Positions 26,378 to 62,962 of a stretch of DNA of 64,000 bases are shown one piece after another. The stretch is from Podarcis erhardii (lineage: Eukaryota). Position 1 is the stretch's first letter, and each line of letters opens with the position of its first letter. Where the stretch lies: the NCBI GenBank assembly GCA_964252035.1, contig OZ176200.1; one strand, given 5' to 3'. The position numbers were made by a program, and so were the translations under genes. The notes beneath the pieces were generated by a model. It made no database searches, was not told where the DNA came from, and saw only the letters and a list, made by a program, of their open reading frames with translations.

Positions 26378-27599
26378 TACAAACACAGGTGTGAAATTTG
26401 TTCCACAGTAGCTACTAGTTTGCTCCAAAGGAAAGCAGTAATATATGCTGCTTTATTTTTAAGGGTTGGTAAAAACTGGCGAGTTCTTGGCAGTCTTTTT
26501 ATTTTGTTCGTTTCACTTTGGACTTGTACAGTGACTGGCATTCCATAGAATGGGATTAACCGCACTGTACTAGACACAGTTGAATTCAAGGCTTGTATCA
26601 GAGGCAGATTTAGGGCAGGGAGAGTGGCTCCCTGCCCCCCGCCCCGGGCTCTGAACCGAGGCATGTGCTGCTGTGCATTGCAACTATGATGTAGTGCACG
26701 TGCAGAAAGGAAAGCACACTGAATTTTGGCCTCACACAAGGTGCTGCTGAAATTTGAAAGACCCAAGTCTGCCTGTGCTTTTATCCTAACACTATGGGGT
26801 TTGCTTGTTTGTTTGCTCTTGTACTGGGAGGTGTCAGGTTTGTTTCCAGTGAAACAGAATTGCTGTCAAGAGCAATTGTTGCTGCTAGTCTAAGCTTGAA
26901 AGCATAGCAGCGAACTCCTAGGGGCTGAGGTCCCTTTGTCCTCCTCCCTCATAAAATATTGGAGGCAGCTGCTCCCTCCCCCAAGTTGATGGGCATTGCC
27001 ATTCAAATGATGTGTGTGCTGCATCTTGTGATTGTGAAGAGCGGGGCTTACCTGAGCCCCCTCAATATTTATTCAATTTGGCACTCCTGCTGGAAAGCCA
27101 AGAAAAGTCCAGGAATCTAATCAGGAGTACAGCTGATGCTATAAGGAAGAGAGTGCCTGTGCAGAATGCAGTTCCATCTACTAGACTAGGGACACGATCA
27201 AGGTGAGCTCAGACCCTCCAAGTGTCCCTATTTTCCAGGGACAGTCCCGGATTTACAGAAGGTGTCCTGGTTTGATCCTGGAATGCCCTGCATTTCCTTA
27301 GGACGCCCCTATTTTCACCGGGGAAATGTTGGTGGGCATGTCTTAGCCTGATAACAGTCGCGCACCTTTCTTTTGAGAACCAGTGAGCCAGCCACCTATT
27401 TCCACTTAAGCAAAGTCACAGAGAAGAACCTAACAACCACCAAGCACTTCGTCCTTCGTAAGTCCTGCGTTTAAAGTGCACTTTCTGTCCTAACAAACAC
27501 ACGGGGAACGATTCGTTGCAGCAGCAGCAGCGGTGACCCCATTATCTTGATTTCCAGAACGGGACAGGCCAGGACTGGAAAAGCGGAAAAAGTCAGCAC

Positions 27600-28086
27600 C
27601 AAGCCCAGGTGAATGAATGGAGCCAGCAGCCGCGGCCCGCGCTTGCGAGCTTCCTTTGTGGCTCCCGCCCCTCGTTCCAAGCCGGAGAGAGGGCACGTAA
27701 CAATCCCAGATCCCAGTCTCTCCCTGCACGTCCGGCACTGCCCGGGAGCTTTTTCGTGCGCTGCGTTGGATCCCGCGTGTTCCCAGCGCGTGTCCTCGAG
27801 GGACGGCTGGATGAGGCGGCGGAGGCGGCGGCGAGAGAGAGAGAGGAAGCCAGGAGGGCGGGAAGGAGGGAGGCGCTGGGCGGGGGCGGAGGCGCCGCTC
27901 GCTCCCCGTGGTACGTGTGCACGCTCCCGAGCGGCATGTCCTCGCTTCTCGTATCCGGCGGCGTGTGGCGCGAGCATGGCATTTCCCGCGTGGAGCTCGG
28001 GCCCGGCCAGAAGCGGCATGCCGCCGCCGTGGTGAGGCGATGCCGCCCCGCCGGCCGGGAGCGGGACCTGGTCTTGCGCGCAAACC
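27600..28086 (+). promoter_or_regulatory. CpG-island promoter/5' UTR of exon 1a with GC boxes and HIF-core motifs
   Basis: Very high CpG density; GGGGCGG at about 27883-27889; CACGTA 27694-27699, CACGT 27727-27731, TACGTG-tg-CACGC 27912-27924. TSS position unknown. Confidence 0.65.
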
Positions 28087-28695
28087 ATGGCCTCCTCCGG
28101 CGGGGAAGCGGCCCAGCAGCAGCCCCCGGCGGCCGCCCAGCTCCGCGGAGACTCAGTAGAAAGCATGAGGAGAATTTTCATCCGCCACCCGCCCGGGAGC
28201 CGCCCGGAGGGGGGCGGAGAGGGGCAGCCTGCCGGGCCGGCCCCAGGCCCCCTCGGAGGCCTCCTGGGCCCCGCTGCGAGCCCGGCGGAGGCCCCGGGCG
28301 TCGAGGGCGCTTCGCCCTCCGCCGGCTCTCCGCCTGGCAGCAAAGCTCCTCTCCGGGAGCCCCGCAGAGATGCGCAGAGGCTAGTCTTGCGCTACGTGGT
28401 GCCCTGCATGAACGCCTATGGCTTGTGCATAGTCGACCACTTCCTGGGGCACAGGATGGCCGAGAAAATCTTCCAAGAGGTCCTGGCTTTGCACCTGAGT
28501 GACAAATTCCAGGACGGCGCCCTGGCGAGCCAGAAGGCGGGCGGCGGCCGAGCCATTCGCGGGGACAAGATTTTGTGGGTTGAGGGCAGTGAGCCGGGCT
28601 GTGAAAATATAGGCTACCTCCTGAAAAGAATGGATAAGCTCATCATGTACGCAGATGGCAAGCTGGGGCGCTACAAAATTAGAGGAAGACACAAG
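28087..28695 (+). CDS. EGLN3: Putative alternative first coding exon (exon 1a) of EGLN3: about 95-aa Pro/Gly/Ala-rich N-terminus plus an EGLN1/EGLN2-like N-terminal half of the HIF prolyl hydroxylase domain
   Basis: ATG in strong Kozak context (aaccATGG) with an in-frame stop upstream (28033-28035). 203 open codons including YVVPCMNAYGLCIVDHFLG...IRGDKILWVEGSEPGCENIG...GKLGRYKIRGRHK, ending in AAG|GTTAGT, phase 0. This is the same junction as exon 1b and is frame-compatible with exon 2. Splicing to exon 2 is inferred, not observed. Confidence 0.8.
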
Positions 28696-29589
28696 GTTAG
28701 TAGTTTGCAAGCCCCGACCGAAGTTCACTCCGGGCTCCTCCGGAGTTTCTGATCTCCCTCTCTGCCATTTCATGTACTCTTCCGAGTCTTAACCACGCAA
28801 TTCCTGGCCGCTCTGCTACCAGCTGCAAACTCGGGCTTGGCATTTGGTCCATCCGCTCAGATCCTAACCCTAGTTCGATCGCTTTGTGAAACAACTTTAA
28901 ACCGTGTAGCGTTCACAGTCTGGCAGCCCACGTGGGATTTCCTATATCCACGAACTGGAGAGGTAGTAGCGGGTGATTGTGTATGGCGGGGGGTAACCTC
29001 ACTACGCTTAAAGACACAGTTTCCTTTTTTTTTTTTTTGCTTTTCCCGCCTTCATCAAAAGTTCCCTAGAGTTATTAACCAGGATTTGTGAGCTAGAGTT
29101 TCAAGGAGAACAAATTTTCTGAAACACTCGTGCGTGTATATACATATATATATAACCCCGAACATCTTACTTTAACGGCTTTCTCTAACGTTTATACAGT
29201 ACTGGTAATTTCTGAAACGATAGTTATCTTGGCAGGTTAGGAGAGTGGCATATTTTCCTAGCTTTTAGGAGAAGAGGAATGAATTTAGAATCCAGGTGGT
29301 GACAAGTCAGTGAGTGCTTTTTAAACACATCATCTGTAACGAGAGGCTTTTGAAAGCCGGGAACTGGTATTCCGCACGCATGATCTTGTTTTCAAAGCGA
29401 ATTCCAGCTCTGCAATATGTTTTGTCAGCAGATGATCAGGTGTGAAAAGGGTGGAGGATGTCTTGTAGTGGGAGAGGGAGAGAAAGAAAAGAGGGAGATA
29501 AGCACTTGTAACCTCGCTCCCCATCCCTATAGCATTAAGTTGCCAAGAGAAACTCAACTGGCACTTAACGCCCTTATCCCCCCCCCCCC

Positions 29590-30529
29590 GTTTGTTTACA
29601 TTGGCTTGTAGTATGTGACCGTAGTAGAAGCGTACATGCTGGGGGAGAATTCCTCAATGGCGGAGACCACACCCACTCCGAGTTGTAGGCGGCGCATGAC
29701 GAACCATAAGCCGCGCCTCCTCCGGACACGCGGCTTTTCCTCTCCGCCCTCTCCCCCACGCCTTGATTCCAGCCGTGAACCCTACGCGGGTTGGACGCTT
29801 CCGGCGAAGCCCCGCCCCGCCTCCCTCTTGATTGGCTGCCCTCACGTTCCACAGGGCTGCGGGTAGGCGCGGGGAGAGATTGTCCCCGGGACGGGGCTCC
29901 ACCCACGTGGCGCTCGCCGCAGAAGTAGGAACACATTCTGCACGTAGCAGACGTATTAATCAGAGAGGGGCCATCTGCTGCCTCGGTGAAATAAATTGAA
30001 AGGAGTTTGCAGGACTCGGCACCAAAAAAAAAAAAAATTAGGGGGAGTGATCACATCAGCAATTGCGGGGTGTTCACACACTGGTCACCCGGCCTTAAAA
30101 CTGGTAGAAAAGAGCTGCTTCAGCTTCCTTTTCCAGAAACTGCCTCTCTGCCAAGGCGCTGATCCCCCCCCCCCCCCGGTATTGGGTGGAGGTCAGTCCG
30201 CGGAAGGCGTGCAGCCACCGTTCACTTCATTAGCCAGCCTTGTGTCGCCCAGGGGCTGGGAGAACCCGAGAAGGTGGCTGCTGACTGCGCTGAAGACAAA
30301 AGTACGAGTTTAGCCAAACTTTTGGGCACGCCGGTTTCTCTGACTAGCCGGACACTGATTTGCTCTGCTCGCTTCTCCCAAGAGTTAGGCATCGCTGCTG
30401 GCGCGTGTGGCGGATTCAGTGTGTTTAGAATCGCTGATAGAAACCAGGTCTCCTGGCGCGCGCTCCGCCGCTTGGCTTGCGGCTCTTGACTTTCTGCTAC
30501 AAGGGGCGAAATCAGTCGGGTTCATTAAA
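29590..30529 (+). promoter_or_regulatory. CpG-rich promoter/5' UTR of canonical EGLN3 exon 1b
   Basis: TGTTTAC 29593-29599, ATTGG 29600-29604 and 29831-29835, GC box CCCCGCCCC 29810-29818, CACGTG 29904-29909, CACGTA 29941-29946; no ATG from 29699 to 30529. Confidence 0.7.
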
Positions 30530-30886
30530 ATGCCACTGGGACATATCATGAGATTAGACCTAGAGAGAATTGCCTTGGACTACATAGTGCCTTGTTTGCA
30601 TGACATTGGTTTTTGCTACCTGGACAATTTTTTGGGCGACTTGGTAGGAGACTGTGTCCTGGAACGTGTGAAGCAGATGCATTATAACGGGGAGCTGCAG
30701 GATGGCCAGCTAGCCGGCAAGCGCAAAGGCATCTCCAAAAGACACTTGAGGGGCGACCAGATAAAGTGGATCGCAGGCACTGAAGAGGGATGCGAGGCCA
30801 TCAACTTTCTCTTGTCACTGATAGACAGACTGGTTATGTACTGTGGAAGTAGACTTGGCAAATACTATGTGAAAGAGAGGTCCAAG
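30530..30886 (+). CDS. EGLN3: EGLN3/PHD3 canonical coding exon 1 (exon 1b), 119 codons
   Basis: Translates MPLGHIMRLDLERIALDYIVPCLHDIGFCYLDNFLG...RHLRGDQIKWI...GKYYVKERSK, the recognisable EGLN3 N-terminus; donor AAG|GTAAGA, phase 0. Confidence 0.97.
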
Positions 30887-33289
30887 GTAAGAAATTAAAA
30901 TGGGGGGAAATAGCTACTAACACTTCTGATGTAATGGGGACTTTTAATTTAGGAGCCATTCTTGAATGTTTGGATTGTAAGGGGGGTTAATATCCTTATT
31001 TGCTTTCATACTGATGCTGGGCTTAATCTTTCCACCATAAACTGCAAAACACAGGTAAGCAATACCAGGGATAAGTTTTTATGATCCTCCACCCCAAGTT
31101 AAAATCCTAAAAAAGTTTATTGTGAATATGCTCCTTTGGAATCAACTGGATTTACTTACTGGTTTAAGAATTTTTCACTTTTTCAGTGCAGCATGTAAAT
31201 GGCTATAATTCACACTGGGGGAGCTGATTTGGTTTAAGTGAGATTATAACAGTGTAACTGGCCATCTTGTCTCCTCCTAGAAGTGGAAATGCAGGGTGTT
31301 GCATTTGTGAGGAATTTGTTTTTTAAAAAATATTACTAATAAGAATTGCACTATAGCATTGATTATACACCTTTAGAAGTTTCCTAGAACTACATTGGCA
31401 ATTCAAAATGATTTTGAATGGTGCCAAAAGTTTGTATAAGTCCATTGCCTAATTAGATTATCCTTGCTTTCCTGTCACTTTCCACTAAGCTCCAGGTTGG
31501 GTTCTTGTGGTGGTCATATGCTGAGTGCTTGTCAGGCTCCTGAGCAGCTTAGCTTGTCTTTAGAAAGGTAATAAAGTTAATCCCTAATTTATGCACATAT
31601 GTACCAGCAGAGGACACTGCACAGCTGAGTAAATAAACAAAATCCACAGCAATTAATAAATTAATTTATGCTGAAAAGTGACCGAAGTGTGGGCCCATGC
31701 ATAAACTCATTTTGGTTTGCATTGATCAAACTGATTGCACAGCTTCAACCTTCTGTTAGCAATCAGTTTCATACAATTTAAGCCTTTGCATGTCAGAAGT
31801 AAATCCTATTGAGCTCAGTGGAATTTCAACTTACTCCCTGGTTAGTGGAGTTAGGATTGCAGCTGTGGAATGCGAAACATATCTGGAAGTGACAACAAAA
31901 ATCCTGATTAATGGCCATGAGAGGACGTTCTGTAACAGTAGTTAGATTGGTTTCCTTCTTCCTTAGTTTCAGACTTCATTGAAATCACCAGATAAATTAT
32001 TTCATTGCTTTTCCTTCCTTCCCTACCACTCAAGAGGTAAAGAAGTAAAATAATGTCATGCATATGTTCAGTTGAACAAAAGCAGTTTTGACAAAAGCCA
32101 GCACATTAGCTAGTTTTTGAAAAGTTGTTCGGGACTTTCTTCCTCACTTCTGTGTTGCTTATTATTCCAGCATCCTTCATGCTAATGAATGAATAGTTTT
32201 ACTAGAACTCAACTTTAGGTAGTGACTAAGCCTACAGAAGTATATCTGTAACTCTGCTATAGGCTTAATTATTTACGGTGCAATCCTATGCCTGTCAGAA
32301 GTAAGTCTCATTGATTCAAATGAGGCGTACTTCCAGGTAAGTGGGTATGGGATTAAAGTCTTTGGATTGTGTGCAACTAACTTTGAATTAGAGTAGACCC
32401 AGTGATCCATTGCTTTTAACATCAATGGGTCTACTCTGAGTCAAAGTTGACTACAACCCCATGAATCACAAATAGGACTTGCAACAAAATATTGCAGTGT
32501 GGACTGGGTGTATTCAGAGTTCCAGACAACAATGGCCTTTTGCAAGACACTTCATTTGCCCTGGTTTTGTCTTCCCAGTCAGCCAGTGTACTATGGCTAC
32601 CAAGCATGCTCAGTGAGCTAGTTGGTGGCTTCCCCTCCTCTTACTTTTTTGGGGTGATATTTTACATTTTTGTGTTTCAGCAAACCTTGGGACTCTTCTG
32701 AACCTCTTATGTATTGATGCATTTTGGGTACAGTCTAATGAGTTTGCTGTTAGCATATAGAATTCTTAGATTTGCTTATGTTTATCACAGAAGTAGAAGT
32801 TAAACTGAGTTAAAAGTGATCAACCATCACTCTGACTGCTAGTAAGCATAGCCACAATCTGTGTACAGTTTTAGCTATCTACGTAAAGCTGTCTTAAGGT
32901 GGTGATTGTAAGCATGCTTACTAGGGAATAAATCCCGGCTGAATTAAATAGGACTTGTAAGCAAAGATGCTTAGAACCGTGGAGCACAGGAGATGGAACA
33001 TCATGGGGGAATGAATATGGAAGAGAAATCATAACACACATTGCACACATTGGGAAGTTACAGACTATATTCATGTTAGAAGCTGATTTAAGCCCCAGTC
33101 TTGAAAATAATCTATGGCCACAATGATTCACACACTTACCTGGAGCCAAGTCCCATTGAACTCAGTTGGACCACTTCTGAGAAGATGTGCATAGGATGTC
33201 ACTGTAAGTTTATTTACTTAATTACTTCTCCAAGGAGCTCATGTTGACACACATGGTCCAAACTCTCCTCGTCTAATCCTTGCCAGATC

Positions 33290-57418: not shown

Positions 57419-57550
<132 letters not shown>

Positions 57551-60307: not shown

Positions 60308-60472
<165 letters not shown>

Positions 60473-62888: not shown

Positions 62889-62962
62889 GTATGCCATGAC
62901 TGTGTGGTATTTTGATGCTGAAGAAAGAGCAGAAGCCAAAAAGAAATTCAGGAATTTAGTTG
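62889..62962 (+). CDS. EGLN3: EGLN3 exon 4; the final coding exon is not seen in the window
   Basis: ctttacag|G TAT GCC...GTT G|gtatgt; 74 bp, (R)YAMTVWYFDAEERAEAKKKFRNLV. Confidence 0.96.

Follow-up and report, generated by a model that had tools for sequence, protein, structure and literature searches.

The HIF prolyl 4-hydroxylases (EGLN/PHD enzymes) carry a His-x-Asp...His iron triad and a 2-oxoglutarate-binding arginine in a double-stranded beta-helix, and their beta2-beta3 'finger' loop closes over the LXXLAP motif of HIF-alpha. The picture of animal oxygen sensing by three such enzymes, PHD1, PHD2 and PHD3, derives from mammals. Earlier loop-swap studies of the PHD enzymes were reportedly carried out by Villar in 2007 and by Flashman in 2008. 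Chowdhury et al. (2016; PMC5007464) found PHD3 to be much more CODD-selective than PHD1 and PHD2, with loop residues contributing to the difference. In PHD2, the variable 'XX' of LXXLAP is contacted by the loop residues Val241, Ser242, Lys244 and Ile251, and exchanging these residues for the Ala, Gly, Arg and Leu of PHD3 raised CODD selectivity, I251L alone giving an enzyme with about 5-fold CODD selectivity (PMC5007464). Conversely, R65K and L73I raised the NODD activity of PHD3 (PMC5007464). Four further determinants lie in helix alpha3 and the alpha3-betaI loop, namely I280, R281, I292 and G294 in PHD2 versus V102, L103, V114 and E116 in PHD3, and NODD hydroxylation is the more hypoxia-sensitive of the two sites (PMC5007464).

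Here we analysed a 64-kb stretch of DNA from a lacertid lizard, referred to as the window, which holds one EGLN3 (PHD3) gene on the + strand. This one gene makes two enzymes through two mutually exclusive first exons, 1a and 1b. Our preferred reading, which we hold to be reasonably probable, is that the 1a enzyme is more NODD-accepting than the CODD-selective 1b enzyme.

Two first exons of one EGLN3 gene

The window, in which no N stretches were found, contains a single downstream EGLN exon set on the + strand, consisting of exon 2 (57419..57538), which begins with AMVACYPG and carries the HVD iron ligands, exon 3 (60335..60471), which carries the second His ligand, and exon 4 (62889..62962); the final coding exon lies outside the window. 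The translations of exons 2-4 encode RHVDNP, NPHEV and ...ATRYA, and thus have the iron triad and 2-oxoglutarate-binding arginine of HIF prolyl hydroxylases. They are contained in the Podarcis EGLN3 protein P0001, as is expected of an EGLN3 orthologue. Upstream lie two coding first exons on the same strand, both recognized as open reading frames and both ending in phase 0 with a GT donor. Exon 1a has 203 codons (28087..28695), with its ATG at 28087 and a GTTAGT donor after 28695, and is located 1.8 kb 5' of exon 1b, the canonical PHD3 first exon of 119 codons (30530..30886), which has its ATG at 30530 and a GTAAGA donor after 30886. Since each first exon has its own start codon and is spliced in phase 0 to the same exon 2, one gene gives two prolyl hydroxylases.

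Exon 1a encodes an N-terminal extension of 95 residues (28087-28371, +), and then 108 residues (28372-28695, +) making up the N-terminal half of the catalytic domain. The extension is variable except for the motif DSVESMRRIFI at 28150-28182, which includes SVESMRRIF and can be recognised in squamates, turtles, caecilians and paddlefish. Exon 1a is 96% identical to the 'EGLN3 isoform X1' of Podarcis muralis (P0001), and exon 1b is 93% identical to turtle 1b and 87% identical to snake 1b; the identity between the exon 1a core and exon 1b is 40%. We considered exon 1a as belonging to an EGLN1 (PHD2) orthologue, and this was ruled out: no Pfam domain was found in exon 1a, which accordingly has no MYND zinc finger, and the exon splices to EGLN3 exons. 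The MYND domain PF01753 was present in the true EGLN1 proteins found, and the full 1a isoform P0001 carries PF13640 and PF13661.

Four small public runs from close relatives (lizards) were aligned to positions 27001-32900. These runs are stored as contigs that are not labelled RNA, and their RNA-like nature is inferred from the contigs stopping at exon ends with near-empty introns, as spliced RNA does; their depths are not rankable and give no relative abundance of 1a versus 1b. The contigs cover exons 1a and 1b, leave the introns almost empty and end exactly at 28696 and 30887, which are the exon ends plus the G common to the donor and exon 2. Past 28696, a contig from run X5 reads CAATGGTAGCCTGCTACCCTGG…, the start of exon 2 (AMVACYPG), and contigs of 1450 and 1776 nt reach well past exon 1a. 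Both first exons were present in three of the four runs, and no AG acceptor was found just 5' of the 1b ATG in the lizard window. Exons 1a and 1b are real, expressed, mutually exclusive first exons. Two short-contig proteins from Logan ('lgn' entries P0071 and P0070) continue past the donor into intron sequence (…RGRHKVSS…); they are therefore regarded as genomic and were rejected as mRNA evidence. Several gene models string 1a and 1b together in one protein, namely P0066 (carp), P0064 (gecko), P0007 (Phrynosoma) and P0065 (Lerista); these fusions are probably annotation artefacts.

The contigs of exon 1a start at 27968 (X9) and 28032 (X1), and those of exon 1b start at 29850 (X5) and 30036 (X1) and run to 30887. 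A separate start of RNA-like contigs 5' of each first exon points to two promoters, and each first exon appears to have its own. A CpG-rich patch precedes each of them, at about 27400-28600 and 29600-30000. For the 5'UTR and CpG-rich promoter region of exon 1a (27400..28086, +), 200-base bins over 27400-28199 have a GC of 0.49-0.73 and a CpG o/e of 0.76-1.14. The second patch, with the presumed promoter and long 5'UTR of exon 1b (29600..30529, +), has a CpG o/e of 0.87-1.01 at 29600-29999 and contains a CCAAT box (minus strand) near 29831, CACGTG at 29904 and GCACGTA at 29941.

The main ATG of exon 1a is in good context, with A at -3 and G at +4. Its leader contains two upstream open reading frames, one of 20 codons with its ATG at 27977 and a second with its ATG at 28041, which overlaps the main ATG out of frame and stops at 28159. 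In geckos the counterpart of this second leader ATG is in frame, and the gene models P0015 and P0016 begin there. Just 5' of the exon 1a CpG island, an interspersed repeat of ~60 bases (27208-27273) occurs in very many transcripts and contigs of all four runs, with a summed depth of 400-2400 and many loose ends on both sides.

The exchanged half of the catalytic domain

The beta2-beta3 loop of exon 1a (28513..28566, +) translates to DGALASQKAGGGRAIRGD, 18 aa, and aligns gap-free to DGQLVSQKSDSSKDIRGD of human PHD2, residues 237-254 (phmmer versus PDB, E 5e-37, 131 bits). That of exon 1b (30701..30757, +) translates to DGQLAGKRKGISKRHLRGD, 19 aa, and its alignments with PHD2 and PHD1 place a gap of one residue in the human loops (phmmer versus PDB, E 5e-28). 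Both translations, the equation of the exon 1a stretch with the PHD2 beta2-beta3 loop, and its SQK…IRGD pattern are as given in a preliminary description of this DNA. The PDB alignments thus confirm, far beyond chance, that the loops differ in length by 18 versus 19 residues and that the 1a loop is as long as that of PHD2 and PHD1.

These lengths are characteristic of the two exon types. The loop has 18 residues in ~74 of the 80 1a-type sequences, the exceptions being a few iguanians and skinks (19-20), one fish (17) and the chondrichthyans (26-29, with an insertion at the tip). It has 19 residues in all ten 1b exons, seven of which come from the window and the fetched loci and three from merged gene models, in the frame DGQLAG…SKRH[L/I]RGD. 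The 1a family has a fixed frame, DG-x-L-[A/V]…IRGD, around six central residues that are free to vary. IRGD is invariant in the 25 aligned 1a sequences, in keeping with the conserved Arg-Gly-Asp end (PHD2 R252, D254) of the finger loop. The counterpart of the variable centre in PHD2 is 243-250, a mobile tip whose position is not the same in the NODD- and CODD-bound structures (PMC5007464).

The Gly-rich centre and the Ala at the usual Gln of DGQL, to which the preliminary description had drawn attention, are present in the 1a loop, but both are lineage-specific and lie outside the known determinant positions. The Gly-rich centre occurs only in lacertids. The Ala of DGAL is found in all squamates and only in squamates, with Glu at this position in turtles, caecilians and paddlefish and Gln or Lys in several fishes. 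The structural papers make no mention of Gln239 as a contact or determinant, and we therefore give the Ala at this position no weight.

Further variation was seen at the extremes of the family. The chondrichthyan 1a loops (L008:2925-3266; P0082, P0097, P0103, P0108) have 8-11 extra residues at the tip, giving 26-29 aa, and their N-terminal extensions span several hundred residues; the skate 1b loop is of normal length, 19 aa, and ends in SKRHLRGD. P0068 (Anolis carolinensis) and P0079 (a Logan contig) have Val at the otherwise invariant Ile251 and are strongly enriched in Ala, Gly, Arg and Pro, which suggests that in some iguanians exon 1a has evolved faster and with a GC bias.

All eight published NODD/CODD determinants are encoded by exon 1. 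Those in helix alpha3 and the alpha3-betaI loop are 280 Ile, 281 Met, 292 Ile and 294 Gly in exon 1a (28642..28686, +), where they were placed by counting backwards along the gap-free alignment from the end of the exon (= PHD2 K297), and Val102, Met103, Val114 and Glu116 in exon 1b (30833..30877, +). The loop determinants of exon 1a are Ala241 (28525-27), Ser242 (28528-30), Lys244 (28534-36) and Ile251 (28555-57), and those of exon 1b, Ala62, Gly63, Arg65 and Leu73, are the human PHD3 residues named in PMC5007464. Read in the order 241/242/244/251/280/281/292/294, human PHD2 has V S K I I R I G, exon 1a A S K I I M I G, exon 1b A G R L V M V E, and human PHD3 A G R L V L V E. Exon 1a has the PHD2 residue at six of the eight positions and exon 1b the PHD3 residue at seven of the eight. 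The set of exon 1a is nevertheless mixed, with the PHD3-type Ala at position 241, and Met at position 281 is found in both exons. Across the 1a family, Ile251, Ile292 and Gly294 hardly vary. Lys244 has been lost in several teleost 1a exons, with Thr in its place in catfishes and characins, and teleost 1b exons have Ile at the 251-equivalent, so that the contrast between 1a and 1b is sharpest in tetrapods.

The selectivity role that the preliminary description had given to the loop, and its distinction between a CODD-selective PHD3 and PHD1/2, hold in the light of the mutant study (PMC5007464). It had further proposed that promoter choice would act as a natural loop swap. The natural exchange is borne out by the mutually exclusive first exons that are expressed and have separate contig starts, and the idea gains from the placement of the published determinants. 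'Loop swap' is too narrow a term, because the exchange takes in a 95-residue extension and all of the N-terminal half of the catalytic domain, with its four determinants in alpha3 and the alpha3-betaI loop.

The 1a catalytic domain was modelled with AlphaFold from a 46-sequence alignment (Podarcis protein, residues 96-325). The model has a pLDDT of 72.8 and compares with PHD2 crystal structures at a TM of 0.83-0.88 and 70% identity. The tip of the 1a loop has a pLDDT < 50, as expected of a mobile loop.

Distribution, age and constraint

Dozens of species have a long form with the 1a N-terminus under the name 'EGLN3 isoform X1' in their annotation, and cyprinids are among the fishes that have both first exons. 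The 1a form occurs in lizards, snakes, turtles and caecilians among the tetrapods, caecilians being the only amphibians with a match, and among the fishes in lungfish, reedfish, gars, paddlefish, bowfin, many teleosts, sharks, skates, rays and a chimaera. No 1a form was found in any mammal, bird, crocodilian, frog or salamander, an absence that is provisional because it comes from word-based searches of annotated and predicted proteins. The sole bird match, P0083 (Ficedula albicollis 'EGLN1, partial'), was rejected as a 1a form, as it is a genuine EGLN1 in which the first-exon region appears twice and identically, most likely through a duplication in assembly or annotation.

The loci of seven species were fetched for the arrangement of 1a and 1b. 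The distance from exon 1a to the downstream exon 1b is 1.0-1.8 kb in turtle, tarpon, snake, caecilian and catfish, and 20 kb in the little skate. As the pair is found in bony lineages and in the little skate, the dual-first-exon architecture predates the split between cartilaginous and bony vertebrates. The 1a core has pairwise dN/dS values of 0.06-0.16, similar to those of the 1b core, which are 0.04-0.135. Judged from these comparisons, the two-first-exon arrangement is conserved under purifying selection and has been so for > 400 million years. Change over deep time is smaller in 1a, with a dN between lizard and catfish of 0.26 for 1a versus 0.42 for 1b, and the mean identity to EGLN1 is 55.5% for 1a and 43.7% for 1b. 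A maximum-likelihood tree confined to the 1a, 1b and EGLN1 cores separated these as three clades, 1b on a long stem (0.47) and 1a on a short one (0.20); a tree of these three groups alone does not give their branching order.

A broader scenario is possible, and we put it forward tentatively and as a whole. EGLN3 may have been born with both first exons, 1a being the conservative, ancestral-type one and 1b a fast-evolving internal duplicate that became the sole first exon in mammals. Most jawed vertebrates might then possess a fourth NODD-competent HIF hydroxylase that was lost in mammals and birds, and the short CODD-selective PHD3 of the textbooks would be a mammalian reduction.

Two stray or decayed copies were encountered. 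In Polyodon spathula, an EGLN3-like copy has lost the start of exon 1b and carries stops and a frameshift there (L003:4970-5330), with exon 1a of the same copy intact (L003:3274-3597); this looks like a partitioning of the first exons between duplicate genes after the paddlefish genome duplication. In Podarcis muralis, a 1.33-kb copy of window positions 27843-29174 is located on another chromosome inside an ELMO intron (L007:5757-7081). It comprises exon 1a with 244 bp of upstream sequence and 480 bp of intron at 95.8% identity, and is annotated as 'EGLN3-like', 221 aa, reading through the donor. Because intron sequence is included, this copy is a DNA-level stray duplicate and not a retrocopy.

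Functional readings and known systems

The two isoforms differ in the N-terminal half of the catalytic domain, with helices alpha1-alpha3, strands beta1-beta3 and the beta2-beta3 loop, and have in common the Fe(II)/2-oxoglutarate core and the C-terminal helix encoded by exons 2-5. The short isoform (1b) is an ordinary PHD3, with a 19-residue loop and the selectivity residues published for PHD3. The long isoform (1a) possesses the 95-residue extension, a PHD2-type 18-residue loop with Ser242, Lys244 and Ile251, and the PHD2-type residues Ile280, Ile292 and Gly294. By analogy with the human PHD2 and PHD3 mutants, it would be expected to accept the NODD of HIF-alpha better than 1b. Choosing a promoter would then amount to choosing a substrate-site preference together with an expression level. 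We lean towards a long isoform that is the more NODD-permissive, PHD2-like one, and a short isoform that is CODD-selective. The 1a chimera need not behave like PHD2, because it shares with 1b a PHD3-type C-terminal helix and further CODD contacts of PHD3 type.

Most of what distinguishes the isoforms biologically could come from the 95-residue extension and the separate promoter. In the main rival reading, which we regard as doubtful, though it deserves serious attention, both isoforms are active HIF hydroxylases for which the loop difference is immaterial to site preference. The 1a isoform would differ through the localisation, partners or stability conferred by its extension and through a constitutive CpG-island promoter with upstream open reading frames, and the 1b promoter would be hypoxia-inducible. 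The SVESMRRIF motif, conserved from lizards to paddlefish, speaks for a role of the extension, as do, for the promoters, the two CpG-rich patches, the HRE-like CACGTG and GCACGTA of the 1b patch, and the upstream frames in the 1a leader; the HRE cores, however, are 5-base motifs that occur in both patches by chance. The C-terminal parts of the enzyme that bind CODD are common to both isoforms, and Ala241 is found in both exons, which agrees with an immaterial loop. On the other hand, six of the eight determinants differ between 1a and 1b in the direction of PHD2 versus PHD3, positions 251, 292 and 294 have been nearly invariant in the 1a family for > 400 million years, and single substitutions at such sites shifted the selectivity of the human enzymes severalfold (PMC5007464).

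It is improbable, in our assessment, that 1a has moved to another job, acting on a non-HIF substrate or as a hydroxylase-independent scaffold, with its PHD2-like residues as ancestral leftovers. Such a shift would fit the 8-11 extra tip residues of the chondrichthyan 1a loops and the long, very variable N-terminal extensions, but conservation extends to the IRGD that ends the loop and to every core residue in contact with the substrate proline, and the catalytic exons are common with PHD3. PMC6739866 also argues against it, since recombinant PHDs are described there as having no activity on the reported non-HIF substrates that were tested. Least probable is that exon 1a is a transcribed relic without a useful protein: its apparent loss in mammals and birds, where no such form was among the matches, and the stray copy in the ELMO intron of Podarcis muralis would suit a relic, but selection (1a core dN/dS 0.06-0.16) and splicing to exon 2 contradict it, the open reading frame, ATG and donor are intact in every lineage examined, and 1a was retained in the paddlefish copy with a decayed 1b.

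The preferred reading, a more NODD-accepting 1a beside a CODD-selective 1b, has consequences for how oxygen sensing is viewed outside mammals. One gene encodes two catalytic domains that differ at residues tied by human mutagenesis to the choice of HIF-alpha site. If 1a is NODD-competent, fishes, caecilians, turtles and squamates, among which are animals tolerant of deep hypoxia, could use promoter choice to adjust the oxygen level at which HIF degradation is set. The 1a/1b pair also provides ready-made natural chimeras for the question of how the loop and helix alpha3 set selectivity.

The 1a isoform is present in automatic annotation and apparently not discussed in the literature: a full-text literature search found no paper describing or discussing it. 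The NCBI models 'prolyl hydroxylase EGLN3 isoform X1' consist of exactly exon 1a and exons 2-5, for example P0001 of Podarcis muralis; they are uncommented predictions, several of which are mis-named EGLN1-like or EGLN2 or have 1a and 1b fused. In a 2024 analysis of how EGLN genes evolved in fish, the longest CDS was used and isoforms were left unmentioned (PMC11370800), and studies of EGLN3 evolution that use the longest CDS in this way mix two first exons that are not homologous in position.

Among characterized enzymes, human PHD2 (EGLN1; PDB 5L9B with CODD, 5L9V with NODD) resembles 1a in having an 18-residue loop that ends in IRGD, and has Ser242, Lys244, Ile251, Ile280, Ile292 and Gly294 in common with it; its identity to the exon 1a part is 56% (61/108, by hand count from the alignment). 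Unlike human PHD2, 1a has no MYND zinc finger and possesses Ala241, Met281 and a different loop centre. The double-stranded beta-helix core and C-terminal helix of 1a are PHD3-type, because exons 2-5 are common to both isoforms. Human PHD3 (EGLN3) belongs to the same gene, exon 1b with exons 2-5 giving the canonical protein, and shares A62, G63, R65, L73, V102, V114 and E116 with 1b. The lizard gene has, in addition, an upstream first exon, which replaces the first 119 residues by 203 others and had no counterpart among the mammalian and bird matches. The engineered PHD2/PHD3 point variants (PMC5007464) exchange the same residues and address the same question of NODD versus CODD; unlike these variants, the lizard exchange is natural, acts through the choice of promoter and first exon, covers the whole N-terminal half of the domain, and is > 400 million years old.
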